Below the pieces are notes generated by a model. That model was not told the DNA's origin, ran no database searches, and saw only the letters and a list, made by a program, of their open reading frames with translations. From Haliotis rubra (taxonomy: Eukaryota), in contig NW_025764968.1 in assembly GCF_003918875.1 (NCBI RefSeq), positions 62,001 to 126,000 on the forward strand: a stretch of DNA of 64,000 nt, written 5' to 3'. This document shows, in pieces, positions 1,524 to 61,769 of this stretch. The translations under genes and the position numbers were made by a program. Each line of letters starts with the position of its first letter. The first letter of the stretch is position 1.

Positions 1524-2636
1524 TTAGGCAACAATAACTACAGTGTTGATGATGGCCGCTGATAGAAATACGACAAAGAGGATGTTATCCAACTTCTGAG
1601 CATCCAAGTTGTGGAGTCTGTCTTTCATCTTGGACACCTCTGTGGAGGTGTCCCCCTCTGTCTTGTCTGCCACAGATGAAGCTGTCTTGTGATCTCCCTG
1701 GAGTTGGTTGTTCCTGATCCTGAGGGTTGTTGTGACAGCCAGGAGTGCCAGGAAGCTTTGAAGCAGGATACAGATGAGATAGATCATGATCTTTGGAACT
1801 CTAGTGGATGTCCTTGGCATGATGTCATAGACAAAGTTGAGGAACACAGCATGCGACACAAAGATGGAAATCAGAAAGGATACTTTCTCTCCTGAATCAG
1901 CGGGAAGGATGAAGACAAAAGCATTCATGATGGAGGTCAAAGCCATTGGTACAATGATACTTAACACGTAGAATAGGCTTTGTCTCTCAAGTGTAAATGT
2001 CAATGATTGGAAAGTAATTCCAATAAATGATACATCTCCACTTGTCGTTTGTATTAATGTCCATTCAGACTCCTTCTTTATGTATGAGGTGTATTCGTAA
2101 CTGGATATAGGGTTGACATGCAAGTTGATATAGTCTCGATAGGTATGAAATATTAACTCACGTTTCTGTTCATCAAAAGGAAACTGAAAGGCATCAGTCA
2201 CACATATGGTCTTGAACATGTCAGATGTGTATGCCAAAACATGGCCATCATTATTTAGACTCATTGTGAAAGATCTGGATGAGAATAGAGACGCGTCACT
2301 CACAGCATTTAATAAATTAACTTGTGGTAGCCATACTTGATGAGGCTCAATGTCAATGCTACCATTATAAAGTGACTTGTTCCAGGACAGACTGGGATCA
2401 GTCCAGTTAACTGTAATGACTCCAGTGAATGTAAGAAGTTGTTCCACAGAATTGAGGTCCAATATAGCTCCAAGTACAAAGTAAATAGAAACATTTACTT
2501 TTGAATGTCCAGGAGGAAATGGTGGCTTCTTAGCTCTTGTGTAGTTGATGGAATTGTGTATTTGAGTCCATGTCTCCCTCAGCAGAAGGCATGTCACGAG
2601 ATATGTGAGAAATATCCAGGACAGATGGGAATACAT
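1524..2636 (-). CDS. Cys-loop ligand-gated ion channel subunit, copy 1 (370 aa, single coding exon; second Cys-loop cysteine mutated to Arg)
   Basis: True start is probably Met46 of the 415-aa ORF (MYSHLSWIF.., hydrophobic signal peptide), giving the same 1113 nt as copies 4 and 5. Motifs: WTDPSLSW, VWLP, CVTDAFQFPFDEQKR (Cys-loop, TGT->CGT), SEW, M1 with Pro, DSGEKVS M2, MPRTS, M3, LD..LF M4. Confidence 0.9.
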   Translation of the reverse strand: MYSHLSWIFLTYLVTCLLLRETWTQIHNSINYTRAKKPPFPPGHSKVNVSIYFVLGAILDLNSVEQLLTFTGVITVNWTDPSLSWNKSLYNGSIDIEPHQVWLPQVNLLNAVSDASLFSSRSFTMSLNNDGHVLAYTSDMFKTICVTDAFQFPFDEQKRELIFHTYRDYINLHVNPISSYEYTSYIKKESEWTLIQTTSGDVSFIGITFQSLTFTLERQSLFYVLSIIVPMALTSIMNAFVFILPADSGEKVSFLISIFVSHAVFLNFVYDIMPRTSTRVPKIMIYLICILLQSFLALLAVTTTLRIRNNQLQGDHKTASSVADKTEGDTSTEVSKMKDRLHNLDAQKLDNILFVVFLSAAIINTVVIVA

Positions 2637-2893
2637 TGTCACTGTCAGTTGAAACAAGCTATAAGTTTCTGTGGAGGCTAGACTCTCAAATGTTGTTGTT
2701 GATACTGTGGTCACAAATACTATCTGTTCTGAATTCTTACTGTAGGCATTCATCCAGTGAAAAACATCCACACCAAACCATGAGATTGTGTTTCTGATTG
2801 CTGTACATGATGAATTTGTTTAATAAAGAGAATGGTTTACAATGTTTGAACAGACATAATGTGGAAGAATGGTTAACACAGTTGTTAGCTTAC

Positions 2894-2935
2894 CTGTTCC
2901 CTGATGTGAGTGCCTCAGATAAATGACAAGTCAAT
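2894..2935 (-). other. Putative non-coding 5'-UTR micro-exon of copy 1 (homologues: 11788-11833, 24542-24592, 33243-33288, 48246-48291, 52644-52694, 57968-58009)
   Basis: On the minus strand every copy has an AG acceptor (e.g. GCTTTTCTTACAG|), 42-51 nt, then ACAG|GTGAGC or ACAG|GTAAGC. The copy 1 exon has no ATG. Confidence 0.65.
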
Positions 2936-3234
2936 CTATATACAAATTTACACACAAAGGTGCCAAGGAACTTTAATTAAAAAGGATAATTCATCTCCTG
3001 GAATGTGACCAAAATGTCTTTAAAGGGGCCATTGTTAAACAAAAGAATGGTATCTCCACACAAAGAATGGTTTCATAGGTTACTTTCCAGAACATTGAAA
3101 ATGGAAAACAGTTTCCTGACAACTGATGTGTTTACAGGAACATTGATTAACCAAGTGAATAGTCGCCTGACTATGAGCTCGAGGTTTCAGAGGTTGGTTT
3201 CAGATGTAAGCACAGCTCTGACATCGCTTTGTTG

Positions 3235-3680
3235 TCCAGGTGAGCTATAAATTCCATTTGTGCTTTTTGCGCAGAACATGTGAGTGTATATTTGTATTGA
3301 TAATGGCAGTATGTGATTGTATTTGCCCGAACCTTTTTTAGAATTCTGAAATAACACACAAAACCTCTCTCATGTTTGCTTGAACATTCATAGTCCTAAA
3401 TCACAACTAAACTTAATGACTCATTATCGTTAAATGTGTTTCACATCATAAATAAGCAGAATGTAATGGAAGGCATACAGTCACATATTGATTATAGGTG
3501 TGGTTGGGAATAACAGGAAATGGACTCGGGTTTGCATACTGATGTCATCTATAAGGAGGAGATTATGATCAAACAGCCTTAATATAAGTAAATACAACAA
3601 ATGGGATGATTATGGAAATGAGCTGAGTGTGTGCTGTACACATAATGGTTAAATGCTGATGTTGTGAATTTGTTTATACA
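3235..3680. promoter_or_regulatory. Conserved upstream non-coding block with AP-1-type palindrome TAATGACTCATTA (also ~12243-12680, 26783-27225, 34010-34440, 52925-53310, partial 59060-59340)
   Basis: ~400 bp of near-identical sequence upstream of six of seven copies; TGACTCA at 3417-3423 and CRE-like TGATGTCA. A regulatory role is inferred. Confidence 0.45.
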
Positions 3681-4127
3681 TATCATGCACATGCTTTTGA
3701 GGAATGTTTTTGTGTTTTCCAATTTTTGCCTTTGTAATTCAGATCATTTTTCAGTTGAGGACAGGGTTTGTCTTTTGAGCTGTCCAGTATTTCTATGTTA
3801 AACCTTGTAAGGCCATCAAGTTCAGATGAGAACATTCTTTCTTTTGCCAAACTCATTCCTGTTTGCTTACTTATCACATGTTTAATGCATCAATGGAATC
3901 GGGAGTGTCTATCAAATATCTTGAAGAAAAATCTTTCAAGAATGGTTTTGAGGATAATGTTTTAATGGTTTTCTGTTATTTTAGAAAAGGTTTTGTTATA
4001 AATTGGACTGGAATTCAGGATCCTATAAAGTATTCTTTTGTTTTCAGTAATACTCTGAATATATACAACACAGTTCACATGTACTCTATTTATATAAATA
4101 CAACTAGACTGTTGTAGCTAGTTTCTT

Positions 4128-7100
4128 GGTCATTCTGTCATCCTATCTCACCATCCCTTCATCATTCTGTCATCCTATCTCACCATCCCTTCATCATTCT
4201 GTTACCCTACCTCACCATTTCATCATCTTTCTGCAATTTCATTCTACCCTTCTGTCTCAATATCCAGTCATCACTCTATAATCCTATCTGAACATCCCAT
4301 CATCTTTCTTCTATCTTATTTGAACATCCCATCATCTTTCTACTATCCTATCTGAACATCCCATCATCTTTCTATTATCCTATTTGAACATCCCATTATC
4401 TTTCTATAATCCTATCTGAACATCCCATCATCTTTGTACCATCCTATCTGAAGATCCCATCATCTTTCTACTATCCTATAGTACAATGTGTGAAGCCCAT
4501 TTCTGGTGTCCCCCACCGTGATGTTGCTGAAATATTGCTAAAAGCGGCGTAAAACTAAACTCAGTCAGTCAGTCAGTCTACTATCCTATCACACCATTCC
4601 ATCACAATTCTACCATTGTATCTCCATTCTGCTATCCTTTCTCACCATCCCACCAATGTACCATTCTATCCCAAAACCACACAATCAGTTCACCATCCCA
4701 CATCATTCTACCATCCTATCTCACCATCCCACATCATTCTACTATCCAATCTCACCATCCAATCACACCATCCCCCATCATTCTTCTATCCAATCTCACC
4801 ATCCAATCACATCCTCCCACATAATTCTACCATCCTATCTCACCATCCCACATCATTCTACCATCCAATCTCACCATCCAATCACACCATCCAACATTCT
4901 ACCACCCAATCACACCATCCCACATCATTCTACCATCCAATCCCACCATCCCACATCATTCTACCATCCAATCACACATCCCACATCATTCTACCATCCA
5001 ATCACATCATCCCACATCATTCTACCATCCAATCACACCATCCCACATCATTCTACCATCCAATCCCACCATCCCACATCATTCTACCATCCAATCACAC
5101 CATCCAACATTCTACCACCCAATCACACCATCCCACATCATTCTACCACCCAATCACATCATTCTACCATCCAATCCCACCATCCCACATCATTCTACCA
5201 TCCAATCACACCATCCCACATCATTCTACCATCTAATCACATCATCCCACATCATTCTATCATCCAATCACACCATTCTACATCATTCTACCATCCAATC
5301 ACATCATCCCACATCATTCTACAATCCAATCACACCATCCCACATTCTACCATCCAATCCCACCATCCCACCATCATTCTACCATCCAATCACACCATCC
5401 ACCATCATTCTACCATCCAATCCCACCATCCCACCATCATTCTACCATCCTATCACACCATTCATTAGCATTCTACAATCGAATGATCTTTCTACCATCC
5501 TATCACACCATCTATCAGCATTCTACCATCAAATGATCTTTCTACCATCCTATCTCACCATCGCAGCAGTACCCTACCATCCTATCTTCATTCTACCATC
5601 TAATCTCACTGTTCCTTCATTATTCTACCATCCAATTTCACCACCTCTTCATTTTCCTATTCAACCTCACCATCCTTCATCATTCTATCCAATCTCAACA
5701 TCCTATTTTCATTCTTCCATCCAATCTCAGCATCACTTCATCATTTTACTTTCCAATCTCACCATCCCATCATTCTACTATCCTATCTCACCATCCCACC
5801 ATCATTCTACTATCCAATCTCACCATCACTTCATCATTTTACTATTCTATTTCACCATCCCTCATCATTCTACTATCCAACCTCATGTCCCTTCATCATT
5901 TTACTATCCAACCTCACCATCCTATTTTCATTCTTCCATCCAATCTCACCATCATTTCATCATTTTACTGTCCTATCTCACCATCCCATCATCATTCTAC
6001 TATCCAACCTTGCCATCCTTCATCATTCTACTATCTTATCTCACCATCCCACCATCATTCTACTATCCAATCTCACCATCACTTCATCATTCTACCATAC
6101 AATCTCATCGTCACTTTATCATTTTACTATCCAATCTCACCATCCCATCATTCTACTATCCTATCTCACCATCCCACCATCATTCTACTATCCAATCTCA
6201 CCATCACTTCATCATTTTACTATTCTATTTCACCATCCCTCATTCTACTATCCAACCTCATGTCCCTTCATCATTCTACTATCCAACCTCACCATCCCTT
6301 CATCATTCTACCATCCAATCTCACCATCATTTCATCATTTTACTGTCCTATCTCACCATCCCATCATCATTCTACTATCCAACCTTGCCATCCTTCATCA
6401 TTCTACTATCCAACCTCACCATCCTATTTCCATTCTTCCATCCAATCTCACCATCACTTCATCATTCTACCATCAAATCTCGTCACTTTATCATTTTACT
6501 ATCCAATCTCATCATCCCTTAATCATTCTACCATCCAATCTCACCATCTCTTCATCATTCTTCCATCCAATCTCACCATCACTTCATGATTTTGCTGTCA
6601 AATCTCACCATCCCTTCATACTTCTACTATCCAATCTCACCATCCTATCTTCATTCTACCATCCAATCTCACAGTTCCTTCATTATTCTACCATCCAATC
6701 TCACCATACGTTCATCATTCTACCATCCAATCTCACCATTCCTTCATCATTTTACTATCTAATCTCATCATCCCTTCATCATGCTTCTATCCAATTTCAC
6801 CATCCTTTCATACTTTTACTATCCAATCTCACCATCCCATCATTTTACTATCTAATCTCACCATCCCTTCATCATTCTACCATCCAATCTCACCATCCCT
6901 TCATTATTCTACCATCCAATCTCACCATCCCTTCATCGTTCTACTATCCAATCTCACCATCCCATCATCATTTTACTATCTAATCTCACCATCCCTTCAT
7001 CATTCTACCATCCAATCTCACCATCCCCTCATTATTCTACCATCCAATCTCATCATCCCCTCATCGTTCTACCATCCTATCTCACCTTCCCATCATTCTA

Positions 7101-7797
7101 CCATCCAATCTCACCATCCCATCATCATTTTACTATCCAATCTCACCATCCCTTCATTCTACCATCTAATCTCACCATCCTATTTTCATTCTACCATCCA
7201 ATCTCACCATCCCATCATTCTTCTTCCAGCCAATCTCACCATCCCATCATCATTTTACTATCTAATCTCACCATCCCATCATCATTCTACCATCCAATCT
7301 CACCAGGCTATTTTCATTCTACCATCCAATCTCACCATCACTTCATCATTTTGTTGTCCAATCTCACCATCCATTAATCATTCTACCATCCACCCTCACC
7401 ATCACTTCATCATTCTACTATCCAATCTCACCATCACTTCATCATTTTACTATCCTATCTGACCATACCATCATCATTCTACTATCCAACCTTGCATACT
7501 TCATCATTCTACTATCCAAACTCACCATCTTATTTCTATTCTTCCATCCAATCTCACCATCCCATCATTATTCTACTATCCAATCTCACCATCCCATCAT
7601 TTTACTATCAAATCTCACCATCCTACCTTTGAATCTGACCATCCCTTCCTCATTCTACTATCCAATCTCACCATCCCTTCCTCATTCTATCATCCAATCT
7701 CACCATCCTTTCATCAGTCTACCATCCAATCTCACCATCCCTTCATACTTCTACCATCCAATCTCACCATCCCTTCATACTTCTTCCATCCAATCAC
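4128..7797. repeat. G-poor CATC-rich minisatellite (~31-32 bp unit, CCATCCCTTCATCATTCTACCATCCAATCTCA)
   Basis: Roughly a hundred degenerate units; source of the spurious His/Pro/Ser/Ile ORFs. Confidence 0.95.
4481..4576 (+). mobile_element. 3' half of a tRNA-derived SINE (near-identical copy at 28024-28119)
   Basis: TGTGTGAAGCCCATTTCTGGTGTCCCC..AAAACTAAACTCA(GTCA)n matches the 3' part of the full SINE at 39110-39271; flanked by TCTACTATCCTA. Confidence 0.75.
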
Positions 7798-10791: not shown

Positions 10792-11610
10792 TTAAAAATT
10801 GACATAAACAAAACATCTCCAGATATCCAAAATGTTTTCCCATGGCACAAACAAGTGCAAAACATACTTAAACAACTTTCCAACTGCAGTTATGCTGCAC
10901 ATAGATGTGAGTTTGGCAACAAAAACAACAGTGTTGATGATGGCGATGGATAGCAATACCACAAAAAGGATGTTATCCATCTTCTGAGCATCCAAGTTGT
11001 GGAGTCTACCTTTCATCTTGGACACCTCTGAGGCGTTATCCCCCTCTGTCTTGTCTGCCACAGTTGAAACTCTCTCGTGATCTCCCTGGAGTTGGTTGTT
11101 CCTGATCCTGAGGGTTGTTGTGACAGCCAGGAGCGCCAGGAAGCTTTGAAGGAGGATACAGATGAGATAGATCATGATCTTTGGAACTCTGGTGGATGTC
11201 CTTGGCATGATGTCGTAGACAAAGTTGAGGAACACAGCATGTGACACAAAGATGGAAACAAGAAAGGATACTTTCTCTCCGGAATCTGCAGGAAGGATGA
11301 AGACAAACGCATTCATGATGGAGGTCAAGGCCATTGGAATAATGATGCTTAACACATAGAAGTGACTCTGTCTCTTCAGGGTCAAGGTCACTGATTGGAA
11401 AGGATATCCCTTAAAGAATGCAACTCCACTTGTCATTTGTATCACTGTCCATTCAGAATCGTTCTTTACAAGTGACATGTATTCAAAACTTGGCAATGGG
11501 ATTTCATTCAATTTGATATAATTCCGATACGAATCAAAGACAAGTTGACATTTCTGTTCATCAAAAGGAAACTGAAAGGCATCAGTTACACATATGGTCT
11601 TGAACTTGCC
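10792..11610 (-). pseudogene. Cys-loop receptor copy 2: N-terminal half deleted, stop codon lost
   Basis: FKTICVTDAFQFPFDEQKC through M4 is present. At ~11610 the sequence joins directly to what is intronic sequence in copy 6 (~537 bp missing, including ATG and signal peptide). The ancestral TAA is AAA at 10912-10914, reading through to 10792. Confidence 0.85.
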
Positions 11611-14513: not shown

Positions 14514-14544
<31 letters not shown>

Positions 14545-15249: not shown

Positions 15250-15629
15250 GGTCATTCTGTCATCCTATCTCACCATCCCATAATCTTTCTACCATCCTAG
15301 CTCACCATCCCTTCATCATTCTGTCATCCTATCTCACCATTCCTTCATCATTCTGTCATCCTATCTCACCATCCCTTCATCATTCTGTCATCCTATCTCA
15401 CCATTCCATCATCATTCTGTCATCCTATCTCACCATCCCATCATCATTCTGTCATCCTAGCTCACCATCCTTCATCATTCTGTCATCCTATCTCACCATT
15501 CCTTCATCATTCTGTCATCCTATCTCACCATCCCTTCATCATTCTGTCATCCTATCTCACCATCCCCTCATCTTTCTACCATCCTAGCTCACCATTCCAT
15601 CATTCTAACATTCTATGTCAACATCCCAT
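15250..15629. repeat. CATC-rich satellite (continues at 20605-21100 after the Gypsy insertion)
   Basis: TCATCATTCTGTCATCCTATCTCACCATCC units. Confidence 0.9.
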
Positions 15630-18600
15630 TGTTGCATAATGAATACTCCCTAAGAGTCTGTACACAATGACTGGTCCATGGGCAACGTGCGTCTGTGTAG
15701 GCCAAAACCAACATGGAGTAAAGTGTTCGTCTCCCACCACAGTTTCATGTTTTCTGAGTCTTCCTAGGACATCTCCAGACATGACATATAACTTAACATG
15801 GTGTCAGAAGTGAGTACGCCTGACAAACTTTACAAATTGTTGTGCATTACTGACTGAATATCTTTTGATTGAAAGAGCCGAGACGCATGTGGTTCAGTGT
15901 CACCTAAATTCGATAGTGGAGAGCATGCGATGTTTTGTGTGACAATATTGAATCTGTGACTAACGGAGTTTCTGTGAATCGGATTATATTGCTAGTCGTG
16001 AGTAATATATGGATAAGCGAAACTACTGCTACTACTACTCAATCATGGCTGATGAAAGTGGAAATATTCCTTCACCTCAAGTGAATCATGTACCTATGAA
16101 CATTCCTTTGCCTCCTAAGCTTGATCTGAAGGGTGATTTGACGAGAAATTTCATAAAGTTCAAATGAATGTGGGGAAACTATGAGCTTGCTTCTCGAACA
16201 AAGACAGATTCTGATGAAGGCAGATCAGCTACACTGTTAACTTGTATTGGTTCTGAAACTCTAGACATATTGGATGGGTTGCAGTTCGACAGTGAAAATG
16301 ATAGGAGGAAAGTCGAGAAAATATTGGACAAACTAGAAGCTTACTGCATTGGCGAGACCAATGAAACATGGGAACGGTTCAATTTCAACAAGCGGAATCA
16401 AGAACACTTTGAATCTGTTGATACTTATGTAGCAACACTTAGAACTCTAGCTAAAACATGCAATTATGGAACACTTGAAGATAGTCTCATCAGGGATCGA
16501 ATGGTGATGGGCATTTGTGATAACTCCACTCGCAAGAGGCTGCTGCAGTCTTCGAACCTATCACTGAAAGATTGTATTGACATCTGTAGGTCCCATGAGA
16601 GAGCAGCTGCTAGACTAAAATCTCTATCAAACACTGAGGATGTGCAAGCTATCAGTAAAACTAGAGGTTACAAAAAACCCAAAGGAAAGGAAACTAAACC
16701 TGGATTGACTACCAGAAGTGATCAGTCTCTACAGTGCAAATTTTGTGGACGCAGTCATGTGTTCAACAGGAAGGAATGTCCAGCATGGGGAAGAATTTGC
16801 AACAAATGTAAACGACCAAATCATTTTGCTTATGTGTGCCAGTCGAGTCAAGCCAATGTTCAACTACTGAGTGATGAGGATACTGAGGATGAATATATTT
16901 TATCAGTGGATGTTGAAAATGTGAACAGTGTTCAATTACACGGTGAAAGTCAACAGTATTTACGGAAGATTTTTGCTGTCCTCCTCATCAAGGAAACTGA
17001 GGTCAAATTTCAGTTAGATTGTGGATCTACTGTCAATGTGTTGCCAGAGACTATCTACGCTAATGTGTTTCAGGATCCCCACCTGGAAAAGTTGGAAACA
17101 CAGGTCAATACTACTCTTCGAATGTACAATGGAGTGAAATCTCAAACTGTTGGCAAGTGTGAAGTGACTGTCAAAAATCCCAGGAATGAGGGTGAATACA
17201 CCATTGCATTCTTGATAACGAGGGACAGAGGCTCACCACCAATACTTGGTGCAATAGCTGTTCAACAAATGCAGCTAATCACTGTGAACTTTGAGAACAT
17301 TTTCCAGATCTCAGGTAGTGGAGATGTTTCTACAGAGTTAGCAAGATTGGATCTGACGGACATAATCCATCGTTACAAGGATGTATTTGAGGGAGAGGGC
17401 ACACTTGATGGTTTGTTGCGTTTTGAAGTAGATGAGACTGTGACACCAGTCCAGCTACCATGTCGTAAGGTTCCATTTGCCTTACAACAGAAACTCAAGG
17501 CTGAACTTGAAAGACTGGCTGATCTGAAGATCATCACCCCTGTGAATGTTCCTACTGACTGGATCTCTGCCCTACTTGTTGTGGTCAAGAAACAGGGTAC
17601 TGACAAGATAAGGATTTGCATAGATCCTAAACCACTGAATCAAGCTCTCAAGAGGAATCATTATCCAATAAAGACAATTGATGACATTCTGCCGGAATTA
17701 TCAAATGCTAAGTGCTTTACTTTAGCAGATGCTAAAAATGGATTTTGGCATATCCAACTGGAGGAGAAAAGCAGTTTCTTGACAACATTTGAAACACCTT
17801 GGGGCCGTTACCGTTGGCTACGAATGCCATTCGGGTTGTCACCAGCACCTGAGGAGTTTCAGCGCCGTTTGAATGAGGCAATATGTGGCTTGGATGGAGT
17901 ACGTGCTGTACATGATGATGTTCTGATCTATGGTGTTGGAGACACTTATGAAGTGGCTGAAGCTGATCATGATGAGAAGTTGTCCAAGTTCCTTGATCGA
18001 TGCAGAAACAGAACTATCAAATTGAACAGATCCAAACTGAAACTGACCGAGGTGCCTTATCTGGGACATGTCGTAACCTCGGATGGATTAAAGATTGATC
18101 ACATGAAAGTTGAAGCAATCACAAACATGCCCACACCAACGGATAAGCAGGGTATTAAGCGCATTTTAGGGATGGTGAACTTTGTTCAGAAATTTGTACC
18201 CAACTTGTCTGAAGTGACTGCACCTCTGAGGGATCTGTTGAAAAGTGATGTGAACTTCAGGTGGGATGAGCAAGTTCATGGCAAGTGTTTGGAAAAAAAT
18301 CAAACATATTCTGTCTGAACCACCTGTACTGAAGTACTTTGACAATGACGCTGAGACAAGCCTTCAGTGTGATGCATCACAAAATGGACTGGGTGTTTGT
18401 CTGATCCAAAATGGTCAGCCTGTAGCATATGCATCTCGATCTTTGACCAGCACTGAGAAACAATATGCTCAGATAGAGAAAGAAATGTTGGCGATTGTCT
18501 TCGGGCATGGAACGATTTGAACAGTATGTCTATGGATGGAAGGTCGTCGTGGAATCGGACCACAAGCCATTGGAGTCAATACTGCGCAAAAGTCTGTTGT

Positions 18601-20604
18601 GTGCTCCGAAGCGTCCCCAACGCATGATGTTACGACTTCAGAAGTACGATTTTGAGGTCATCTACAAGAGGGGATCTCAAATGTTCTTTGCTGACACTCT
18701 GAGTAGAGCATATCTTCCACATGTGAAACATACTGAGACTGATGACGGAGATGTGTTTGCTGTTGATGTTCGATGTCAGATAGCGCTTGACGTTGAATCC
18801 ATCAACATGGTTGAGTATGTGCCAATATCTGAGGAACGAATTGACCAGTTACAAAAAAGCAGCTGTGGAAGACAAATCAATGACGATACTGAAGGATCTG
18901 ATTCAGGACGGCTGGCCAACGTCGTCAGATGATGTGCCATGGTGTGCCAGGGTCTTTTTCCCCTTTTGCGATGAGCTCTCTGTTCAAAACAGCATAGTGT
19001 TCAAGGGTGAACGTGTTGTTGTGCCAGTCAGTATCCGCCCTGGCATCATGGAAAGAATTCACTACAGTCACTTGGGGATACAAGGTTGTATCAGAAGAGC
19101 CAGAGAGTCTGTGTATTGGCCCAATATGGCCGCTGACCTCGCAGATTTCATCAGCAAGTGTGATACTTGCAATACGCTGCAACAGGATCAAAGTCGAGAG
19201 CCATTGGTCAGTCATGAAATACCTAGTCGTCCATGGGAGAAACTAGGGTGTGTTCTTTTTTAGTTTGATCAAAAAGATGTTTTGATCACTGTTGACTACT
19301 ACTCGGACTATTTTGAGGTTGACAGACTGCATGATAAAAGGGCACCTGAAATCATTAAAAAGTTGAAATCCCATTTGGCGAGGCATGGACTTCCCAATCA
19401 GATTGTGTCAGACAATGGACCTCCCTTTCATTCTGAAGCTTTCCATACATTTGCAACAGAGTATGAGTTTGATCATATCACTTCATCACCCAGGTACCCA
19501 CAGTCGAATGGGAAAGTGGAGAGTGCTGTGAAGATCGTCAAGAGACTCATGAGTAAGTCTCAGCATGCACAGTCAGACCCCTTTCTGGCCCTATTGGACT
19601 TAAGAAATGTGCCGACTGGACGGTGTAGGCAGCTCGCCAGTTCAAAGGTTGTTTGGGGCAGAGCGAGAACGGCTACCAACGTCAAGTCGATTGCTGCAGC
19701 CAAAACTATTGAAAACGCCCCTGCCGCACTTTCCAGCAAGAGGTCCAAACAAGCTTACTACTACAATCGTGGTGCAGCTGAACTGTCAGAACTGAGAGAT
19801 GGAGATGTAGTTCGGGTGAAGCCATTCAGTCGTGACAAAAAGAAATGGAAGAAAGCTGTCAGAGAGAACAGCAAGTGGATGTAATGATCGTATGACATGC
19901 GTACAGAAGATGGAAGATCTCTTGAGGAGAAATAGACGCCATCTAAGAAAATCTCAAGAGGCTGCCCCTGAGACTAAAGATGTCGAACTGGATTTGGAAG
20001 AGCAGAGAATGGATGAAAGGTCAATGAAAGAGTTTCAGTCAACTGTGAACTCTCACGGTAACACTCCTGTGAAAACCCCTGTGAAAACTCCTGTGAAAAT
20101 TTTGAAAACTCCTGTAGACTTTGATGTGAACACTCCTGTGAACACTCCTAGGATCATGGACAGTTCTGTTCATGGCACAGCACCTGGTCATGAGATCAGA
20201 ACGAGGAGAGGCAGGGTGCTCAGACCACCACCCGGATACAGGGACTTTGTGCCTTAAAAAGAAAAAAAGGGAGGAAGATATGACGTGTGGTCCTGCTTAT
20301 CAGCAAAGACTTTTAATTTCTCAAGAAAGAGAGATAGACTTTAATTTGTTCATTTTAACTTGTTTAGCATTTGTTTAAATTGTTTGCTGGGATAGTGTGT
20401 TAATTGCTATCTTTACTTTTCTAAAGAAAGGGAGATGTTGCATAATGATTACTCCCTAATAGTCTGTACACAATGACTGGTCCATGGGCAACGTGCGTCT
20501 GTGTAGGCCAAAATTAACATGGAGTAAAGTGTTCGTCTCCCACCACAGTTTCATGTTATCTGAGTCTTCCTAGGACATCTCCAGACATGACATATAACTT
20601 AACA
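15630..20604 (+). mobile_element. Full-length Ty3/Gypsy LTR retrotransposon (Mag-like), inactivated
   Basis: 169-bp LTRs (15630-15798, 20436-20604), TG..CA, 5 mismatches. 5-bp TSD CCCAT. PBS TGGTGTCAGAAGTG (tRNA-Leu type). PPT AAAGAAAGGGAGA. Order gag-PR-RT-RH-INT. Confidence 0.97.
16045..20257 (+). pseudogene. Gypsy gag-pol polyprotein with premature stops and frameshifts
   Basis: ATG at 16045; in-frame TGA at 16165. Two Zn knuckles (CKFCGRSH..C, CNKCKRPNHFAYVC), protease LDCGS, RT RMPFGL..VHDD, RNase H CDAS/DHKPL, integrase H..H..CDTC, VDYYS, SDNGP, SNGKVE. Frameshifts at ~18300, 18500, 18860, 19615; TAG at 19261. Confidence 0.92.
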
Positions 20605-23224: not shown

Positions 23225-24213
23225 TTAGGCAACAAAAACAACAGTGTTGATGATGGCGACAGATAGAAATACCACAAAAAAGGATGTTATCCATCTTCTG
23301 AGCATCCAAGTTGTGGAGTCTGCCTTTCATCTTGGACACCTCTGAGGCGTTATCCCCCTCTGTCTTGTCTGCCACAGATGAAACTCACTTGTGATCTCCC
23401 TGGTGTTGGTTGTTCCTGATCCTGAGGAGTGTGACAGCCAGGAGTGCCAGGAAGCTTTGAAGGAGGATACAGATGAGATAGATCATGATCTTTGGAACTC
23501 TAGTGGATGTCCTTGGCATGATGTCGTAGACAAAGTTGAGGAACACAGCATGCGACACAAAGATGGAAACAAGAAAGGATACTTTCTCTCCGCGGAATCG
23601 GCAGGGAGGATGAATACAAAAGCATTCATGATGGAGGTCATTCAGATTCTTTCTTTATATATGACCCATATTCATAACTGGATATTGGGAGAACATGCAA
23701 GGTGATATAATTGCGATAAGTATTGAAGATCAACTCACATTTCTGTTCATCAAAAGGAAACTGAAAGGCATCAGTCACACATATGGTCTTGAACATGTCG
23801 CTTGTGTGTGCCAAAACATGGCCATCATGTTGTCGACTCATAATGAAAGATTTGGATGAGAATAGAGACACGTCACTCACAGAATTTAATAAGTTAATTT
23901 GTGGGAGCCATACTTGATGAGGCTGAATATCAATGCTACCATTATAAAGTGACTTGTTCCAGGACAGACTAGGATCAGTCCAGTTTACTGTAATCACTCC
24001 AGTGAATGTTAGAAGTTGTTCCACAGAATTGAGGTCCAATATAGCTCCAGGTGAAAACCTAATAGTAACGTTAACCGTTGAATGTCCAGGAGGAAATGGT
24101 GGATCTTTAGCTCTTGTGTAGTTGATGGAATTCCGTATTTCAGTCAATGTCTCTCCCATCTGTAGGCATGCCACGAGATTTGTGAGAAATATCCAGGACA
24201 GATAGAAATACAT
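23225..24213 (-). pseudogene. Cys-loop receptor copy 3: 124-bp deletion after KKESE plus indels in the TM region; open ECD-only ORF 23638-24213
   Basis: Signal peptide and extracellular domain are open to ..KKESE*. The junction GAGGTCA|TTCAGA at 23640 removes loop C and most of M1. Downstream lesions relative to copy 4: +2 (~23592), -3 (~23428), +1 A (~23280). Confidence 0.85.
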
Positions 24214-31990: not shown

Positions 31991-33103
31991 TTAGGCAACA
32001 AAAACAATAGTGTTGATGATGGCCACCGATAGAAATACCACAAAGAGGATGTTATCCAACTTCTGAGCATCCAAGTTTTGAAGTCTGCCTTTCATCTTGG
32101 ACACCTCTGAGGCGTTATCCCCCTCTGTCTTGTCTGCCACAGTTGAAACTCTCTTGTGATCTCCCTGGAGTTGGTTGTTCCTGATCCTGAGGGTTGTTGT
32201 GACAGCCAGGAGTGCCAGGAAGCTTTGAAGGAGGATACAGATGAGATAGATCATGATCTTTGGAACTCTAGTGGATGTCCTTGGCATGATGTCGTAGACA
32301 AAGTTGAGGAACACAGCATGTGACACATAGATGGAAACCAGAAAGGATACTTTCTCTCCGGAATCGGCAGGAAGGATGAAGACAAAAGTATTCATGATGG
32401 AGGTCAAGGCCATTGGAATAATGATGCTTAACACATAGAAGAGACTTTGTCTTTTCAGGGTCAAGGTCACTGATTGGAGAGCAATTTCACTTAAGCTTGC
32501 ATCTCCACTTGTCATTTGTATTAATGTCCATTCAGACTCCTTCTTTATATATGAGCTGTATTCATTACGGGGTATAGGGTTGACATGCAAGTTGATATAG
32601 TCTCGATAGGTATGAAATGTTATTTCACATTTCTGTTCATCAAAAGGAAACTGAAAGGCATCAGTCACACATATGGTCTTGAACATGTCGGATGTGAATG
32701 CGAAAACACTGCCATCATGATTTAGACTCATAATGAGAGATCTGAATGAGAATAGAGAGGTGTCACTCACAGCATTTAATATATTAACTTGTGGTAGCCA
32801 TACTTGATGAGGCTCAATGTCAATGCTACCATTATAAAGTGACTTGTTCCAGGACAGACTGGGATCTTTCCAGTTAACTGTAATAACTCCAGTGAATGTT
32901 AGAAGTTGTTCCACAGAATTGAGGTCCAATATAGCTCCAAGTACAAAGTAAATAGAAACATTTACTTTCGAATGTCCAGGAGGAAATGGTGGCTTGTTAG
33001 CTCTTGTGTAGTTCATGGAATCCAGTATTTCAGTCCATGTCTCCCTTAACTGCTGGCAAGCCACGAGATTTGTGAGAAATATCCAGGACAAATGGAAATA
33101 CAT
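31991..33103 (-). CDS. Cys-loop ligand-gated ion channel subunit, copy 4 (intact, 370 aa)
   Basis: Complete ORF: signal peptide, C-x13-C (CVTDAFQFPFDEQKC), GEK, four TM segments, TAA. Confidence 0.93.
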   Translation of the reverse strand: MYFHLSWIFLTNLVACQQLRETWTEILDSMNYTRANKPPFPPGHSKVNVSIYFVLGAILDLNSVEQLLTFTGVITVNWKDPSLSWNKSLYNGSIDIEPHQVWLPQVNILNAVSDTSLFSFRSLIMSLNHDGSVFAFTSDMFKTICVTDAFQFPFDEQKCEITFHTYRDYINLHVNPIPRNEYSSYIKKESEWTLIQMTSGDASLSEIALQSVTLTLKRQSLFYVLSIIIPMALTSIMNTFVFILPADSGEKVSFLVSIYVSHAVFLNFVYDIMPRTSTRVPKIMIYLICILLQSFLALLAVTTTLRIRNNQLQGDHKRVSTVADKTEGDNASEVSKMKGRLQNLDAQKLDNILFVVFLSVAIINTIVFVA

Positions 33104-33384
33104 TGTTACGGTCAGTCCTCACTTAACCATGAGATTGTGTTTGTGATTGCAGTATATGATGGATTTCCTTGATATAGAGAATGGTTTAGAATGTTTGTAC
33201 AGCCATAATGTGGAAGAATTGTCAAGACACTTCTTAGCTCACCTGTTGCTCTGACGTGAATGCTTCAGATAAATGACAAGAAGACAGTCTATAGGTACAC
33301 ACATAGGTGCTCAGGAACCTGGAATGTGACCAAAATGGCTTTAAAGAGAACATTGTTAAACCAAAGAATGGTATCTCCACACAA

Positions 33385-33895
33385 AGTACGGTTTCATAGG
33401 TTACTTCTCAGGAACATTGTTGATCAAAGAAAGGTTTCATAGGCTTCTTCACGGGAACATTGTTGATCAAAGAAAGGTTTCATAAGTTACTTCACAGGAA
33501 CATTGTGGAACAAAGAAAGGTTTCATAGGTTACTTCACAGGAACATTGTGGAACAAAGAAAGGTTTCATAGGTTACTTCACAGGAACATTATGGAGCAAA
33601 GAAAGGTTTCATAGGTTACTTCACAGGAACATTGTGGAACAAAGAAAGGATTCATAGGTTACTTCACAGGAACATTATGGAGCAAAGAAAGGTTTCATAA
33701 GTTACTTTACAGGAACATTGTGGAACAAAGAAAGGTTTCATAGGTTACTTTACAGGAACATTGTTGAACAAAGAAAGGTTTCATAGGTTACTTCACAGGA
33801 ACATTGTTGATCAAAGAAAGGTTTCATAGGTTACTTTACAGGAACATTGTGGAACAAAGAAAGGTTTCATAGGTTACTTCACAGGAACATTGAAC
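33385..33895. repeat. 43-bp minisatellite (AAGAAAGGTTTCATAGGTTACTTCACAGGAACATTGTGGAACA), ~12 copies
   Basis: Period 43 measured directly (33541 to 33584). Confidence 0.95.
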
Positions 33896-38105: not shown

Positions 38106-38109
38106 CAAA

Positions 38110-41171: not shown

Positions 41172-41172
<1 letters not shown>

Positions 41173-41221
41173 GTTGTGAAATGAGTAAAAGACCAGGCAA
41201 GATTAGTGAACAATCAATAAA

Positions 41222-46866: not shown

Positions 46867-47979
46867 TTAGGCAACAAAAACAACAGTGTTGATGATGGCG
46901 ATGGATAGAAATACCACAAAGAGGATGTTGTCCATCTTCTGAGCATCCAAGTTTTGAAGTCTGCCTTTCATCTTGGACACCTCTGTAGAGTTATCCCCCT
47001 CTGTCTTGTCTGCCACAGTTGAAACTCTCTTGTGATCTCCCTGGAGTTGGTTGTTCCTGATCCTGAGGGTTGTTGTGACAGCCAGGAGTGCCAGGAAGCT
47101 TTGAAGGAGGATACAGATGAGATAGATCATGATCTTTGGAACTCTAGTGGATGTCCTTGGCATGATGTCATAGACAAAGTTGAGGAATACAGCATGTGAC
47201 ACAAAGATGGAAATCAGAAAGGATACTTTCTCTCCGGAATCGGCAGGAAAGATGAAGACAAAAGCATTCATTATGGAGGTCAAGGCCATTGGAATAATGA
47301 TGCTTAACACATAGAAGAGACTTTGTCTCTCAAGGGTTAAGATCACTGATTGGAGAGCAATTTCACTGAAGTTTGCTTCTCCACTTGTCATTTGTATTAA
47401 TGTCCATTCAGACTCCTTCTTTATATATGAGGTGTATTCATTACGGGGTATAGCGTTAACATGCAAGTTGATATAGTCTCGATAGGTATGAAATGTTATT
47501 TCACATTTCTGTTCATCAAAAGGAAACTGAAAGGCATCAGTCACACATATGGTCTTGAACATGTCGGATGTGAATGCGAAAACAATGCCATCATGTTGTA
47601 GACTCATTATGAAAGATCTGGATGAGAGCAGAGACGCGTCACTCACAGCATTTAATAAATTAACTTGCGGTAGCCATACTTGATGAGGCTCAATGTCAAT
47701 GCTACCATTATAAAGTGCCTTGTTCCAGGACAGACTGGGATCAGTCCAGTTAACTGTAATGACTCCAGTGAATGTTAGAAGCTGTTCCACAGAATTGAGG
47801 TCCAATATAGCTCCAAGTATAAAGTAAATAGAAACATTTACTTTCGAATGTCCATGAGGAAATGGTGGCTTCCTGGCTCTTGTGTAGTTGATGGAATCCA
47901 GGATTTCAGTCCATGTCTCTCTCAGCTGTTGGCATGCCACGAGATTTGTGAGAGATATCCAGAAGAGATGGAAAAACAT
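46867..47979 (-). CDS. Cys-loop ligand-gated ion channel subunit, copy 5 (intact, 370 aa)
   Basis: Start at Met21 of the 390-aa ORF (MFFHLFWIS..); all motifs intact; 1113 nt. Confidence 0.92.
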   Translation of the reverse strand: MFFHLFWISLTNLVACQQLRETWTEILDSINYTRARKPPFPHGHSKVNVSIYFILGAILDLNSVEQLLTFTGVITVNWTDPSLSWNKALYNGSIDIEPHQVWLPQVNLLNAVSDASLLSSRSFIMSLQHDGIVFAFTSDMFKTICVTDAFQFPFDEQKCEITFHTYRDYINLHVNAIPRNEYTSYIKKESEWTLIQMTSGEANFSEIALQSVILTLERQSLFYVLSIIIPMALTSIMNAFVFIFPADSGEKVSFLISIFVSHAVFLNFVYDIMPRTSTRVPKIMIYLICILLQSFLALLAVTTTLRIRNNQLQGDHKRVSTVADKTEGDNSTEVSKMKGRLQNLDAQKMDNILFVVFLSIAIINTVVFVA

Positions 47980-48349: not shown

Positions 48350-48693
48350 AGTTACGTTACAGGAACATTGTGGAACAAAGAAGGATTTCATAGGTTACTT
48401 CACAGGAACATTGTGTTACAAAGAAAGGTTTCATAGGTTACTTCACAGGAACATTGTGTTACAAAGAAAGGTTTCATAGGTTACTTCACAGGTGCATTGT
48501 GGAACAAAAGAAGATTTCACAGATGTTTTCACAGGAACATTGTGGAACAAAGAAAGATTTCATAGGTTACTTCACAGGAACATTGTTGATCAAAGAAAGG
48601 TTTCATAGGTTACTTCACATGAACATTGTGGAACAAAGAAAGATTTCACAGGTTACTTCACAGGAACATTGTGGAACAAAGAAAGATTTCATA
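48350..48693. repeat. 43-bp minisatellite, ~8 copies
   Basis: Same unit as 33385-33895. Confidence 0.92.
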
Positions 48694-50418: not shown

Positions 50419-51207
50419 TAATTGTAAAATCCATATGTAGAACATCCCCAGGTATATCAGTATGTTAAGTATATATATCAGTGAACATGACATGAATATA
50501 TTTACATAACATCTGATGATATCAAAACAGTTATATCATGACAAAAATAAGTGCTATAGATAAGTATGCAATTAAGCTCCATTTCCAACTGGAATTATGT
50601 AAATATGTAAATCGCCTAGTGCGGTTATGCGACAACAGAGTTGAGATCTTGATATATATCTACATATGACATTGATAGCTTGATACAGAAGTATCAATTA
50701 TTTGCTAGAACAATGTCAATAACTTGATATGACAATATTCAAAAGTCATATAACATGGAAAACTAATTCCATTAACACTATCATCTACAACACAGAAATA
50801 CATGTTAATTTTGCCAAAACTAGAGCAAAAAAACTATAGTTGGTTCAGTTAAAAAACACATGCAAACACCAATCCATTTTGTCTGTTGTTTTCTTGAGTC
50901 AACTTGTAAACAAATCTTCTGACAGTCAAATTGTCAGAGGTGCTTTGGATGTGAAGAAATACATGGTCATTGACAGATAGCTGGGTATTCAATTCTCCTG
51001 CTCCCTGGACACAGTCACCACAAAGCATCTGATAGCTTCCCTACCTTATGTGGCACATATCTTGGCATATCAGTGCATTAAAATCTCTGCCAAATTGACA
51101 TTAACAACATATCTGAAGATATCCAAAATGTTTTACCATGACACAAACAAGTGCACAACATACATAAACAACTTTCCAACTGCGGTTATGCTGCACATAG
51201 ATGTGAG

Positions 51208-52315
51208 TTAGGCAACAAAAACAACAGTGTTGATGATGGCCACCAATAGAAATACCACAAAGAGGATGTTACTCATCTTCTGAGCATCCAAGTTGTGGAG
51301 TCTACCTTTCATCTTGGACACCTCTGAAGAGTTATCCCCCCCTGTCTTGTCTGCCACAGTTGAAACTCTCTTGTGATCTCCCTGCAGTTGGTTGTTCCTG
51401 AGGGGTTGTTGTGACAGCCAGGAGTGCCAGGAAGCTTTGAAGGAGGATACAGATGAGATAGATCATGATCTTTGGAACTCTGGTGGATGTCCTTGGCATG
51501 ATGTCGTAGACAAAGTTGAGGAACACAGCATGTGACACAAAGATGGAAACCAGAAAGGATACTTTCTCTCCGGAATCTGCAGGAAGGATGAATACAAAAG
51601 CATTCATGATGGAGGTCAAGGCCATTGGAATAATGATGCTTAACACATAGAAGAGACTTTGTCTCTCAAGGGTAAAGGTCACTGATTGTAAAGAAATTCC
51701 CTTAAAGAATGCAACTCCACTTGTCATTTGTATCACTGTCCATTCAGAATCGTTTTTTAGAAATGGCATGTATTCAAAACTTGGCAATGGGATATCATTC
51801 AATTTGATATAATTCCGATACGAATCAAAGACAAGTTGACATTTCTGTTTATCAAAAGGAAACTGAAAGGCATCAGTCACACATATGGTCTTGAACTTGC
51901 CATAGATCTCAGCGAGGAGAGTACCATCATGCTTTAAATTCATTATCAATGGTCTAGTTGTAAGAAGAAGTGCTTCACTTTCAGCATTTATAAGATTAAT
52001 TTGTGGGAGCCATACTTGATGAGGCTGAATATCAATGCTACCATTATAAAGTGACTTGTTCCAAGACAGACTAGGATCAGTCCAATTCACTTTAATCAAT
52101 GCAGTGAATGTTAGAAGCTGTTCCACAGAATCAAGGTCCAATATAGCTCCAGGTGAAAAGTTAATAGTAACGTTAATCTTTGAATGTCCAGAGGGAAATG
52201 GCGGATCTTTAGCTCTTGTGTAGTTGATGGAATTCCGTATTTCAGTCCATGTCTCTCTCATCTGTAGGCATGCCACGATATTTGTGAGAAATATCCAGGA
52301 CAGATGGAAATACAT
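51208..52315 (-). pseudogene. Cys-loop receptor copy 6 (divergent B-type ECD), net -5 frameshift just after M3, loses M4
   Basis: ORF open from MYFHLSW to LAVTTT. CCTGATCCTGAGGG reads CCTGAGGGG at ~51397-51405. M4 and the ancestral TAA (51208-51210) survive in another frame. Could partly be an assembly indel. Confidence 0.8.
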
Positions 52316-54182: not shown

Positions 54183-54354
54183 TATTGTCTTGAGGAAAAT
54201 GCTTTTCTCCTATTACAGAAAAAACATCTTTTAGATATGCTGGATTTCAGGATCTCTTAAAAGTCATCTTTTGTTTTCATAGATACACAACACAGTTCAC
54301 TTGGAACACAACACAACACAACTAGAACTTTGTACCTAGTTTCTTGAACATTTA

Positions 54355-54815
54355 TTCATCCTATCTCACCATCCCATCATCATTCTACCATCCTATCTCA
54401 CCATCCCATCATCATTCTACTATCCTATCTCACCATCCCATCATCATTCTACCATCCTATCTCAACATCCCATCATCATTCTACCATCCTATCTTACCAT
54501 CCCATCATTATTTTACCATCCAGTCTCACCATCCATCATCATTCTACTATCCTATCTCACCATCCCTTCATCATTCTACTATCCTATCTCACCATCCCAT
54601 CAGCATCTACTATCCAATCTCACCACCCCATCCTCTTTCTACCATCCAATCTCACTACCCTACCATTCCACAATTCTATTTCACCATCCCATCATCATTC
54701 TACCGTCATGTCTCACTACCCCATCATTCTGCCATCCTGTCTCACCATCAGTCATCAATCTATGATGCTGTATCACCATTCCATCATCAGTCTACCATCC
54801 CAACTGATCATTCCA
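54355..54815. repeat. CATC-rich satellite
   Basis: Same unit family. Confidence 0.9.
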
Positions 54816-56637
54816 TTGTCATTCTTGTATGTATGGGACAGCAAGCTATGCTCTCCTAAACACTGACATAACAGATGGTGTGGCCAGACTTCATGATTAC
54901 ATTGATAACGTGTCATGAAATTCCATTTCCTTATTCCTGCAGTATCCATCACTGGCTGTCTGGCCCTGACTTACTTAAAGGTAGTCCATATATGGCTGTA
55001 ATACTTCTTATTGCAGCATCAAACAAGATCCGTCAACAGCTCACTGTGCGTTGACATGCCCAGGTCATCACCAAACCAAAAAGCGATTTGTTTTATGTGA
55101 AAATGCTAAACAAGTATTTATGTTACTCTTTAGAACCAGTGACATTATTTTCAGGTGCAATGGAAATTGTTTTGCTGCAACCAAACCTGTAAACCAGGTA
55201 CTAAATAAAAACGATTTTCCACCCCTGACTTAATCAATGTCATACTGGTGGAGAACTTGAACACCTCAAGAGTGTAACTTAGTGATTCCCAAAATCTATG
55301 TGTGCAGAACTCTGTTGTGAAATTGATAAAAGACCAGACAGGATCTATCAATAATCAATACATTTAATTTACACACACACATTAATGTTTACAGTGACAA
55401 CAGAAAATAGATTGGGTAAAATAACTGACATCAGCAATAAGTAACAGGCACTGTGATTTATCTAAGTGCACTCACGACTGTCCAGAATGTTGTCACTGCC
55501 AAATGTCTTGTAACAGGCGTCTGTCTATTCTTGTCTCCAGTTAAGTGTAGTTACTACAAGTATATTCACAACATCTACTGCCTCACAACAATCCCCTTGT
55601 TCATGAAAAGAAAGTTTTTAACACAAGGGACAACACCTATGAGTGTTAAAGTTTCAGAAAAAAACAGGTAAGCTTACAATTGGCATTGCTTGGCTTGGGC
55701 ATCAAAATCAAAACACTTACAGCTCTCTAACTGTCAAATTATCAAAGAAGTTTGTGATGTCAGGAAAAGATGTCTTTCAAATCCAATGATATTTGAATTG
55801 CTAAAATGTGGTATGCAGTTTTCCTGCCAATAGTTGCAAACAGATCTAATTGTAAAATCCATATGTAGAACATCCCCAGGTATATCGGTATGTTAAGTGT
55901 ATATATCAGTGAACGTGACATGAATATATTTACATAGCATCTGATGATATCAAAACAGTTATATCATGACAAAAATAAGTGCTATAGATAAGTATGCAAA
56001 TTAAGCTCCATTTCCAACTGGAATTATGTAAATATGTAAATCGCCTAGTGCGGTTATGCGACAACATTGTTGAGATCTTGATATATATCTACATATGACA
56101 TTGATAGCTTGATACAGAAGTATCAATTATTTGCTAGAACAATGTCAATAACTTGATATGACAATATTCAAAAGTCATATAACATGGAAAACTAATTCCA
56201 TTTAACACTATCATCTACAACACAAAATACATGTTAATTTTGCCAAAACTAGAGCAAAAAAACTATAGTTGGTTCAGTTAAAAACCACATCCAAAGTCGA
56301 ATCCATTTTGTCTCCTGTTTTTTTTTTAGTCAACTTGTAAACAAATCTTCTGACAGTCAAATTGTCAGAGGCGCTTTGGATGTGAAGAAATACATGGTCA
56401 TTGACAGGTAGCTGGATATTCAATTCTCCTGCTCCCTGGACACAGTCACCACAAAGCATCTAATAGCTTCCCTACCTTATGTGGCACATCTCTTGACATA
56501 TCAGTGCATTAAAACTCTGACAAATTGACATTAACAAAATATCTGAAGATATCCAAAATGTTTTACCATGACACAAACAAGTGCACAACATACATAAACC
56601 ACTTTCCAACTGCAGTTATGCTGCACATAGATGTGAG

Positions 56638-57748
56638 TTAGGCAACAAAAACAACAGTGTTGATGATGGCCACCAATAGAAATACCACAAAGAGGATGTT
56701 ACTCATCTTCTGAGCATCCAAGTTGTGGAGTCTCTCTCATCTTGGACACGTCTAAAGCGTTATCCCCCTCTGTCTTGTCTGCCACAGATGAAGCTCTCTT
56801 GTGATCTCCCTGGAGTTGGTTGTTCCTGATCCTGAGGGTTGTTGTGACAGCCAGGAGTGCCAGGAAGCTTTGAAGCAGGATACAGATGAGATAGATCATG
56901 ATCTTTGGAACTCTGGTGGATGTCCTTGGCATGATGTCATAGACAAAGTTGAGGAACACAGCATGTGACACAAAGATGGAAATCAGAAAGGATACTTTCT
57001 CTCCTGAATCGGCAGGAAGGATGAAGACAAACGCATTCATGATGGAGGTCAAGGCCATTGGAATAATGATGCTTAACACATAGAAAAGACTTTGTCTCTC
57101 AAGGGTCAAGATCACTGATTGGAGAGCAATTCCACTAAATGATGCAACTCCACTTGTCATTTGTATTAATGTCCATTCAGACTCCTTCTTTATATATGAG
57201 CTGTATTCATTATCGCGTATGGGGTTAACATGCAGGTTGATATAGTCTCGATAGGTATGAAAGATTAACTCACATTTCTGTTCATCGAAAGGAAACAGAA
57301 AGGCATCAGTCACACATATGGTCTTGAACATGTCGTTTGTTTGTGCGAAAATAGTGCCATTATGATTTAGACTCGTAATGAAGGATCTAGATGAGAATAG
57401 AGACGTGTCACTCACAGCGTTGAATAAATTAACTTGCGGTAGCCATACTTGATTAGGCTCAATGTCAATGTTACCATTGTAAAGTGACTTGTTCCAGGAC
57501 AGACTAGGATCAGTCCAGAAAATGCTAATGTATGCAGTAAATGTTAGAAGTTGTTCCACATAATCAAGGTCCAATACAGCCCCAAGTACAAAGTAAGTAG
57601 AAACATTTACTTTCGAATGTCCAGGAGGAAATGGTGCCTTCTTGGCCCTTGTGTAATTAATGGAATCCAGGATTTCTGTCAACGTCTCCCTTAGCTGTTG
57701 GCAAGCCACGAGATTTGTGAGAAATATCCAATACAGGCGAAAAGACAT
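56638..57748 (-). pseudogene. Cys-loop receptor copy 7, -2 frameshift in the M3-M4 loop, loses M4
   Basis: ORF open from MSFRLYWIF to VSKM. 2-nt loss at ~56733. M4 and TAA (56638-56640) persist out of frame; length 1111 vs 1113. Confidence 0.8.
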
Positions 57749-61738: not shown

Positions 61739-61769
61739 ATTTTGACTTGTACCTCTTAACATGAGTTTT

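Follow-up and report, generated by a model that had tools for sequence, protein, structure and literature searches.

The stretch of DNA analyzed here (the window, 64,000 nucleotides) is part of contig QXJH01001068.1 of the blacklip abalone Haliotis rubra (positions 62,001-126,000) and carries a tandem array of genes encoding Cys-loop receptors related to nicotinic acetylcholine receptors (nAChRs). A first-pass annotation of the bare sequence had suspected a gastropod genome, which is borne out. Using the list of open reading frames (ORFs) and a tblastn search of the window with copy 4, we located seven copies (c1 to c7) of a 1113-nt single-exon gene, all on the minus strand; for none of them does an intron have to be assumed between the signal peptide and the fourth membrane segment (M4). 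The state of each copy was read from a pairwise nucleotide alignment to c4 (1113 nt), which served as the reference. Three of the seven frames are open: c4 (31991..33103) is an intact 370-aa gene encoding a signal peptide, a ligand-binding domain, and membrane segments M1 to M4; c5 (46867..47979) is likewise an intact 370-aa gene; and c1 (1524..2636) is an uninterrupted 370-codon ORF with a damaged signature loop, in which the second Cys-loop cysteine is replaced (CGT, Arg, for TGT at 2160-2162). The remaining four are broken, each with different lesions. c2 (10912..11608) is a 5'-truncated pseudogene with a type-B ligand-binding half, of which codons ~140-370 remain and immediately upstream of which lies a 184-bp repeat in two units. 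c3 (23225..24213) is a pseudogene that has lost 124 nt (codons 192-233) and carries +2 and +1 frameshifts as well as a TGA at codon 318. c6 (51208..52315), also with a type-B ligand-binding half, has a 5-nt deletion at codon 305 that puts the M3-M4 loop and M4 out of frame, and c7 (56638..57748) has a 2-nt deletion at codon 339 that puts M4 out of frame. The count of two intact and five damaged copies in the first-pass annotation is thereby corrected, while the birth-and-death turnover that it was taken to show stands.

All seven co-oriented, intronless copies proposed there were recovered, but the array is larger. An eighth co-oriented copy, whose 370-codon frame is intact and which shares 78% identity with c4, lies about 10 kb before window position 1 on the same contig (L006:9413-10525; record 52143..51043). 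Thus, the array extends outside the window and comprises at least eight copies on one contig. A second H. rubra locus (L003) holds two more intact full-length genes, Hru1 and Hru2. At least two copies are present in Haliotis asinina, of which Has1 is full length once extended upstream of its RefSeq start and Has2 is cut by the end of the locus.

The RefSeq models of these genes in H. rubra (window 46870-47391, which is c5; L003:10001-10525 and 16664-17164; L006:10001-10525) are pore only, 174 or 166 aa long, and are named "CHRNA7-FAM7A fusion protein-like". Full frames of 369 to 371 codons with a signal peptide and a ligand-binding domain underlie them: model P0191 (174 aa) matches c5 residues 197-370 exactly, and model P0192 belongs to the eighth copy. 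Because each RefSeq model begins at an internal Met, the public H. rubra models lack the ligand-binding half; the H. asinina model (335 aa) likewise begins at an internal Met and lacks the first 36 residues. The RefSeq name recalls human CHRFAM7A (dup-alpha7), and the pore-only models do resemble an N-terminally truncated alpha7. However, the truncation here is an annotation artefact, and the abalone genes are unrelated to the human fusion gene. Whatever the function of the family, its public models cover only a part of each gene.

The encoded proteins are recognized by Pfam as PF02931 (Neur_chan_LBD, 1.5e-26) and PF02932 (Neur_chan_memb, 1e-13). An AlphaFold2 model built on 60 relatives (predicted local distance difference test score, pLDDT, 88.2; predicted template-modeling score, pTM, 0.80) consists of a beta-sandwich followed by M1-M4, and its best Foldseek match among solved structures is human alpha7 (E 4e-27; template-modeling score 0.74). 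The C145-x13-C159 loop is found in c2 and c4-c7 and is kept in the N-terminal ORF of c3, whereas c1 has Arg at position 159. G249-E250-K251 (GEK, with the -1' Glu of a cation-selective pore ring) precedes M2 in all copies. Both features had been noticed in the first-pass annotation, as had the short M3-M4 segment, which measures 41 aa. The abalone proteins share with human alpha7 the fold, the domain order, a Cys-loop with an FPFD motif, the GEK ring, the pre-M1 Arg, and the M2-M3 Pro. They differ from it in overall sequence (24% identity), in the 9' residue of M2 (Val in place of Leu), in having 11' His, 16' Asn, the short M3-M4 loop, and no introns, and above all in the agonist site.

In a HMMER alignment of c4 to human alpha7, Tyr93 is replaced by Leu, Trp149 by Tyr, Trp55 by Val, Tyr188 by Ser, and the vicinal pair Cys190-Cys191 by Ile-Ala; loop C is about 6 aa shorter than that of alpha7, and Tyr195 is thereby deleted. 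All five positions of the aromatic box are therefore replaced in c4, and the other copies have L, I, or F in loop A, Y in loop B, and V, L, or Y in loop D. No family member has a vicinal CC in loop C. The loss of the agonist box, previously read from an alignment by eye, is thus confirmed, and on these residues the genes are predicted to be non-cholinergic.

The two halves of the genes have very different histories. Divergence at silent sites (dS) and the ratio of nonsynonymous to synonymous rates (dN/dS) are Nei-Gojobori estimates that rest on 66-110 silent sites per segment. Within the array, dN/dS is 0.4-0.8 in the ligand-binding domain and 0.03-0.3 in M1-M3. Three deep ligand-binding lineages are seen, namely, the window copies (types A and B), Hru1, and Hru2 with Has1. 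They are separated by a dS of 1.3-2.0 with a dN/dS of about 0.3, yet have open frames of 369 to 371 codons. Between their M1-M3 segments, dS is only about 0.05-0.10, and this pore DNA remains about 98% identical among paralogues in which the ligand-binding halves are saturated. A maximum chi-square scan locates the change from one pattern to the other at codon 208-210, immediately before M1 (chi-square, 145-207). For example, c4 and Hru1, located on separate contigs of the same genome, are 60.5% identical in the ligand-binding domain and 98.1% identical over codons 216-320. The pore cassette of c4, from pre-M1 to the stop codon (31991..32476, minus strand), has about 92-94% DNA identity to the cassettes at the second H. 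rubra locus and in H. asinina, whereas the ligand-binding half is barely alignable.

The ages of the lineages can be set against the split of the two species. Has1 and Hru2 are orthologues, both intact, with a ligand-binding dS of 0.31, which matches a control pair of single-exon nAChR-like orthologues (0.27) and the 70-82% identity of the colinear flanks. A dS of 1.3-2.0 thus makes the ligand-binding lineages several times older than the rubra-asinina split, and the pores have been homogenized since. Constraint on silent sites of the pore DNA was also considered, because the dS of M1-M3 between H. rubra and H. asinina (0.08-0.17) is lower than that of the ligand-binding half (0.31). It was dropped, since the control L004/L005 has an M1-M3 dS of 0.22 (13 silent differences versus 5-10) and the excess is not significant. 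The contrast between paralogues (dS of 1.3-2.0 versus 0.05) remains after this control and is assigned to gene conversion; conversion with a boundary at pre-M1 is the simplest account of the homogeneity of the pores.

Within the ligand-binding domain, loops A-F were mapped from the alpha7 alignment (68 loop residues and 104 other residues of the domain). The dN/dS of the loops is 1.32 (c4-c5), 1.29 (c4-c1), 1.05 (c4-c7), and 0.98 (Has1-Hru2), and that of the nonloop residues, here called the scaffold, is 0.23-0.37. Substitutions in the pocket thus accumulate at roughly the rate of silent sites, and the scaffold stays conserved. This pattern fits diversification of ligand specificity, as in a chemoreceptor, and, equally well, a pocket free of constraint.

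Matches of more than 50% identity in a collection of 15 billion proteins are Haliotis entries only, and the family has so far been seen only in this genus. From the 150 best cluster representatives, we excised 191 receptor units and used them, without cephalopod chemotactile receptor (CR) sequences, for a FastTree phylogeny; taxon labels were obtained for 30 of the ~150 nearest clusters (20 inside and 10 outside the clade described next). The family sits on a long stem (0.87) inside a clade of 79 rows with a Shimodaira-Hasegawa (SH)-like support of 100, and all 20 labelled members of this clade are gastropods (Haliotis, Gigantopelta, Babylonia, Nucella, Batillaria, Bulinus, and Aplysia). In an IQ-TREE analysis of 61 rows, the family is monophyletic (100) and again falls inside the gastropod group (SH approximate likelihood ratio test [SH-aLRT], 91), while its immediate sister differs from that in the FastTree phylogeny. 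Haliotis, Biomphalaria, and bivalves are represented among the ten labelled clusters that fall outside this clade; cephalopods are not. A look-alike search of the ESM Atlas returned generic nAChR clusters only, a search of public gene calls for the exact c4 sequence gave no match, and a literature search for abalone members, under the RefSeq name or a tentacle or chemosensory role, found nothing relevant.

The residues of the family can be compared across this sample. The vicinal Cys pair is absent from all 79 rows of the gastropod clade and present in only 3 of the other 112 relatives; none of the 191 nearest relatives retains the loop A Tyr or the loop B Trp. Because the loss of the acetylcholine box is common to nearly all of these relatives, it is not special to the abalone array; the loss is real but less telling than the first-pass annotation had assumed. 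The relatives P0002, P0093, and P0176, which were checked, are also single exon. The features first noticed therefore describe a large, old group rather than the array alone. In M2 (window 32290-32360 in c4), the 9' Val occurs in 64 of the 79 gastropod-clade rows, whereas 98 of the 112 other relatives have 9' Leu; a polar 16' residue is common across the gastropod clade; and 11' His is found in all family members and five other Haliotis genes.

Intronless tandem arrays of divergent nAChR-like genes are an already published feature of molluscs (PMC6896357 and PMC13174522). Jiao et al. (2019, BMC Genomics 20:937, PMC6896357) described single-exon molluscan nAChR-like genes, thought to have been retroposed and then multiplied in tandem, that form arrays of 2 to 12 genes in oyster and pearl oyster and show lineage-specific expansions; the Cys-loop or the binding motifs are missing from some members, and expression is weak or absent in many of those with few introns. 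The abalone family has the same single coding exon, tandem arrangement, and grouping of paralogues by lineage. That survey, however, treats bivalves in detail and includes no abalone, whereas the abalone family is known only from Haliotis, by partial models, and is set apart by a pore cassette homogenized across paralogues and loci. New here are corrections to the gene models, the wider extent of the family, the loss of the agonist site across the clade, and the split between a homogenized pore and divergent ligand-binding domains. A nicotinic-like pentameric channel type without the vicinal Cys pair is also represented by Alpo4, an orphan lophotrochozoan receptor of Alvinella pompejana that responds to neither acetylcholine nor serotonin and whose ligand is unknown (eLife 2023, PMC10338036). 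Unlike the abalone family, which has lost all five residues, Alpo4 keeps the aromatic cage (F103, W159, Y199, Y205, and W65).

The Cys-loop receptor fold, cation-type pore motifs, loss of acetylcholine contacts, retention of ORFs, mosaic divergence, and pseudogenes are all observed features of these genes. Considering them together, we think it fairly probable that the genes form a Haliotis-only family of single-exon, orphan, non-cholinergic cation-channel subunits in which a pore kept by conversion is joined to old, divergent ligand-binding halves. The family would descend from an old molluscan expansion of intronless nicotinic-like genes and would have grown locally through tandem and segmental duplication, with copies often dying, the window holding most of it. 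The pore half (pre-M1 to M3) would be kept nearly uniform among paralogues and loci, most likely by gene conversion together with strong purifying selection, and the extracellular half would consist of old, deeply diverged lineages whose agonist-site loops change approximately as fast as silent sites. Intact members may form channels that share a pore scaffold and open in response to a signal other than acetylcholine, and the specificity of the pocket may differ between paralogues. From the evolutionary pattern, varied external chemicals can tentatively be proposed as the likeliest class of ligands; a chemosensory role is a conjecture. Doubtful in its full form is the further idea of an abalone chemoreceptor system independent of cephalopods, in which many fast-diversifying pockets would share one converted pore cassette and would serve a few cells of the tentacles, the epipodium, or competent larvae in the detection of surface cues, for instance compounds from algae or biofilms.

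Several points weigh against a functional family with a converted pore and diversifying pockets. (i) Gene conversion is deduced from contrasts of divergence on 66-110 silent sites, without a formal tract test, and the low pore dN/dS of single copies could reflect conversion by one functional donor instead of selection acting on each of them. (ii) A loop dN/dS near 1 is the expectation under neutral drift and is no proof of positive or diversifying selection. (iii) Only 4-8% of the sampled words were found in RNA runs, and mapping of four RNA runs, with coded run and tissue identities, to 4,001 nt around c4 yielded just two contigs, one of 220 nt (depth, 2.7; 4 mismatches) and one of 284 nt (depth, 3.3; 24 mismatches); each falls within the conserved stretch of the pore and cannot be distinguished from carry-over of genomic DNA. 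(iv) In the collection of 15 billion proteins, transcriptome assemblies included, NCBI gene models are the only representatives of the family, and no protein derived from a transcript was found. The sensory role suggested in the first-pass annotation is accordingly not supported by these data: two short, low-depth pore contigs in four RNA runs do not demonstrate expression in any sensory tissue. Very low expression in bulk samples is typical of chemoreceptors and likewise of dead genes. The same trace of RNA would suit a decaying set of retrogenes without present function, whose intact frames are simply young, as would the heavy attrition within the window (4 of 7 copies broken, in addition to the lost Cys-loop cysteine of c1), the ligand-binding dN/dS of 0.5-0.8 in recent pairs, and the greater number of silent genes among intron-poor molluscan nAChRs (Jiao et al., 2019, PMC6896357). 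We consider such decay unlikely, because ligand-binding lineages with a dS of 1.3-2.0 keep full frames in two species and at several loci, the orthologues Has1 and Hru2 are both intact after a dS of 0.31, and dN/dS is 0.23-0.37 in the scaffold and 0.03-0.3 in the pore. Open frames kept over a dS of >1.3 at three loci of the two species, and a dN/dS well below 1 in scaffold and pore, argue for function in at least some members.

The loss of acetylcholine contacts on both the principal (loops A, B, and C) and the complementary (loop D) faces, the loop dN/dS of about 1 alongside a strictly kept pore, and a uniform pore cassette that suits coassembly would all be expected of silent accessory subunits in heteromeric channels, cholinergic or other, which would contribute a pore but no agonist site and whose loops would drift freely. 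Yet known accessory subunits are single conserved genes and not lineage-specific arrays with fast turnover, the CC-less state of the whole gastropod clade would imply many accessories without an obvious partner, and there is no evidence of coexpression; we regard this explanation as improbable. A relationship to cephalopod CRs was considered as well. As summarized in PMC11526382 and PMC13174522, the CRs are nAChR-derived, intronless, clustered cation channels with a fast-changing pocket and lost acetylcholine binding, and sensory expression and ligands have been proven for octopus CRT1 and squid CRB1 (van Giesen 2020, Allard 2023, and Kang 2023, cited therein). Two functional traits that would mark a CR are expression in peripheral sensory epithelium and gating by poorly soluble or hydrophobic external compounds. 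The abalone array resembles them in its derivation from nAChRs, its intronless and clustered genes, the acetylcholine contacts lost by sequence, the short cytoplasmic loop, and the fast-changing pocket; however, the intronless, clustered state and the lost contacts are common to nearly all of the 191 relatives and do not discriminate. A "CR-like" clade that includes gastropods has been reported in a 2026 preprint (PMC13174522). On this reading, the abalone genes would be true relatives of the cephalopod receptors, placed within the CR or CR-like clade, and would serve contact chemoreception in the tentacles, the epipodium, or the larvae. This is very unlikely in our estimation. In HMMER scores, human alpha7 (113.8 bits) exceeds 5-HT3A (96.8) and squid CRB1 (87.5), and octopus CRT1 lies outside the top 60; a profile of 60 molluscan relatives gives 314 bits for alpha7 and 278 for 5-HT3A, with no CR in the top 60; and, in a tree that itself held no CR sequence, none of the 30 labelled nearest clusters is from a cephalopod. 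Moreover, the CR clade is mainly cephalopod, whereas the abalone family lies in a clade in which only gastropods are labelled, and the CRs have proven sensory expression and ligands, whereas the abalone family shows only the trace RNA signal given above. Given the all-gastropod labelled clade (SH-like, 100; SH-aLRT, 91) and the lower score of CRB1, the radiation is probably independent of cephalopod CRs, as one of the two options in the first-pass annotation had it.

For the family of orphan channel subunits that we favor, two further points matter regardless of function. Loss of the acetylcholine site characterizes a whole clade of intronless nAChR-like genes in molluscs, and the split of a single exon into a homogenized pore and an old, divergent ligand-binding domain offers a case for studying conversion and diversification in receptor arrays. 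If the channels were gated by external chemicals, they would represent a second, independent recruitment of nicotinic-type receptors for chemosensation, and, if they formed independent abalone chemoreceptors, the conversion of neurotransmitter receptors to chemoreceptors would be a recurrent event within molluscs. Such a role would also bear on the cues for larval settlement in abalones, a group both farmed and threatened.

The duplicated unit of the array spans about 1.5 kb upstream and 0.5-0.7 kb downstream of the gene. It includes a 43-bp tandem repeat, present in 11.9 copies about 0.3-0.8 kb upstream of c4 (33381..33892) and found again upstream of c5 (48351-48694) and c7 (58127-58603). 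Larger blocks are duplicated too, e.g., 3255-5294 and 26797-28861 (94% match). A remnant of a long terminal repeat retrotransposon gag-pol region (16168..19884, plus strand; RVT_1, Integrase_H2C2, and rve) is inserted between c2 and c3. About 100 nt before the ATG are conserved in most copies (window 33104-33270 compared with the regions upstream of c1, c3, c5, c6, and c7) and contain a pyrimidine-rich run that ends in CAG 7 nt before the ATG, a candidate splice acceptor of the 5' untranslated region. The segment upstream of c4 is replaced, and its alignable part consists of the 14 nt before the ATG only.

In H. asinina (L001, CM074534.1, 1-21008), the receptor copies fall within a gene model for a 2587-aa LRRK2-like protein, which is encoded on the opposite strand. 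L001 is colinear and orthologous with L003 of H. rubra and not with the window. Nesting in a host gene was also considered for the window and rejected, since a tblastx comparison of L001 with the window revealed no shared host exon.

The intergenic DNA is rich in other repeats. Scans of the 64-kb window for Rfam families and tRNAs found nothing. A short interspersed repeat (window 30900-31033 and 63762-63866), which recurs at the H. asinina and H. rubra loci and has no Rfam or tRNA match, reaches a summed contig depth of 10^4-10^5 in each of the four RNA runs and probably represents a transcribed element resembling a short interspersed nuclear element or a miniature inverted-repeat transposable element. 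A 225-aa ORF (37868-38545, plus strand) has an N-terminal motif like that of the reverse transcriptase of long interspersed nuclear elements and no Pfam match. Tandem repeats of 171, 67, 59, and 44 bp occur at 35941-36659, 43336-44005, and 60085-62252. Sequence-related, C/T-rich satellite arrays of 31-32-bp units (up to 78 units) recur between the receptor copies (4242-7795, 15252-15603, 20951-21102, 27785-28861, 41221-42264, and 54357-54825) and yield a strong negative GC skew as well as long, spurious ORFs on the plus strand with a high content of His, Pro, Ser, and Thr.

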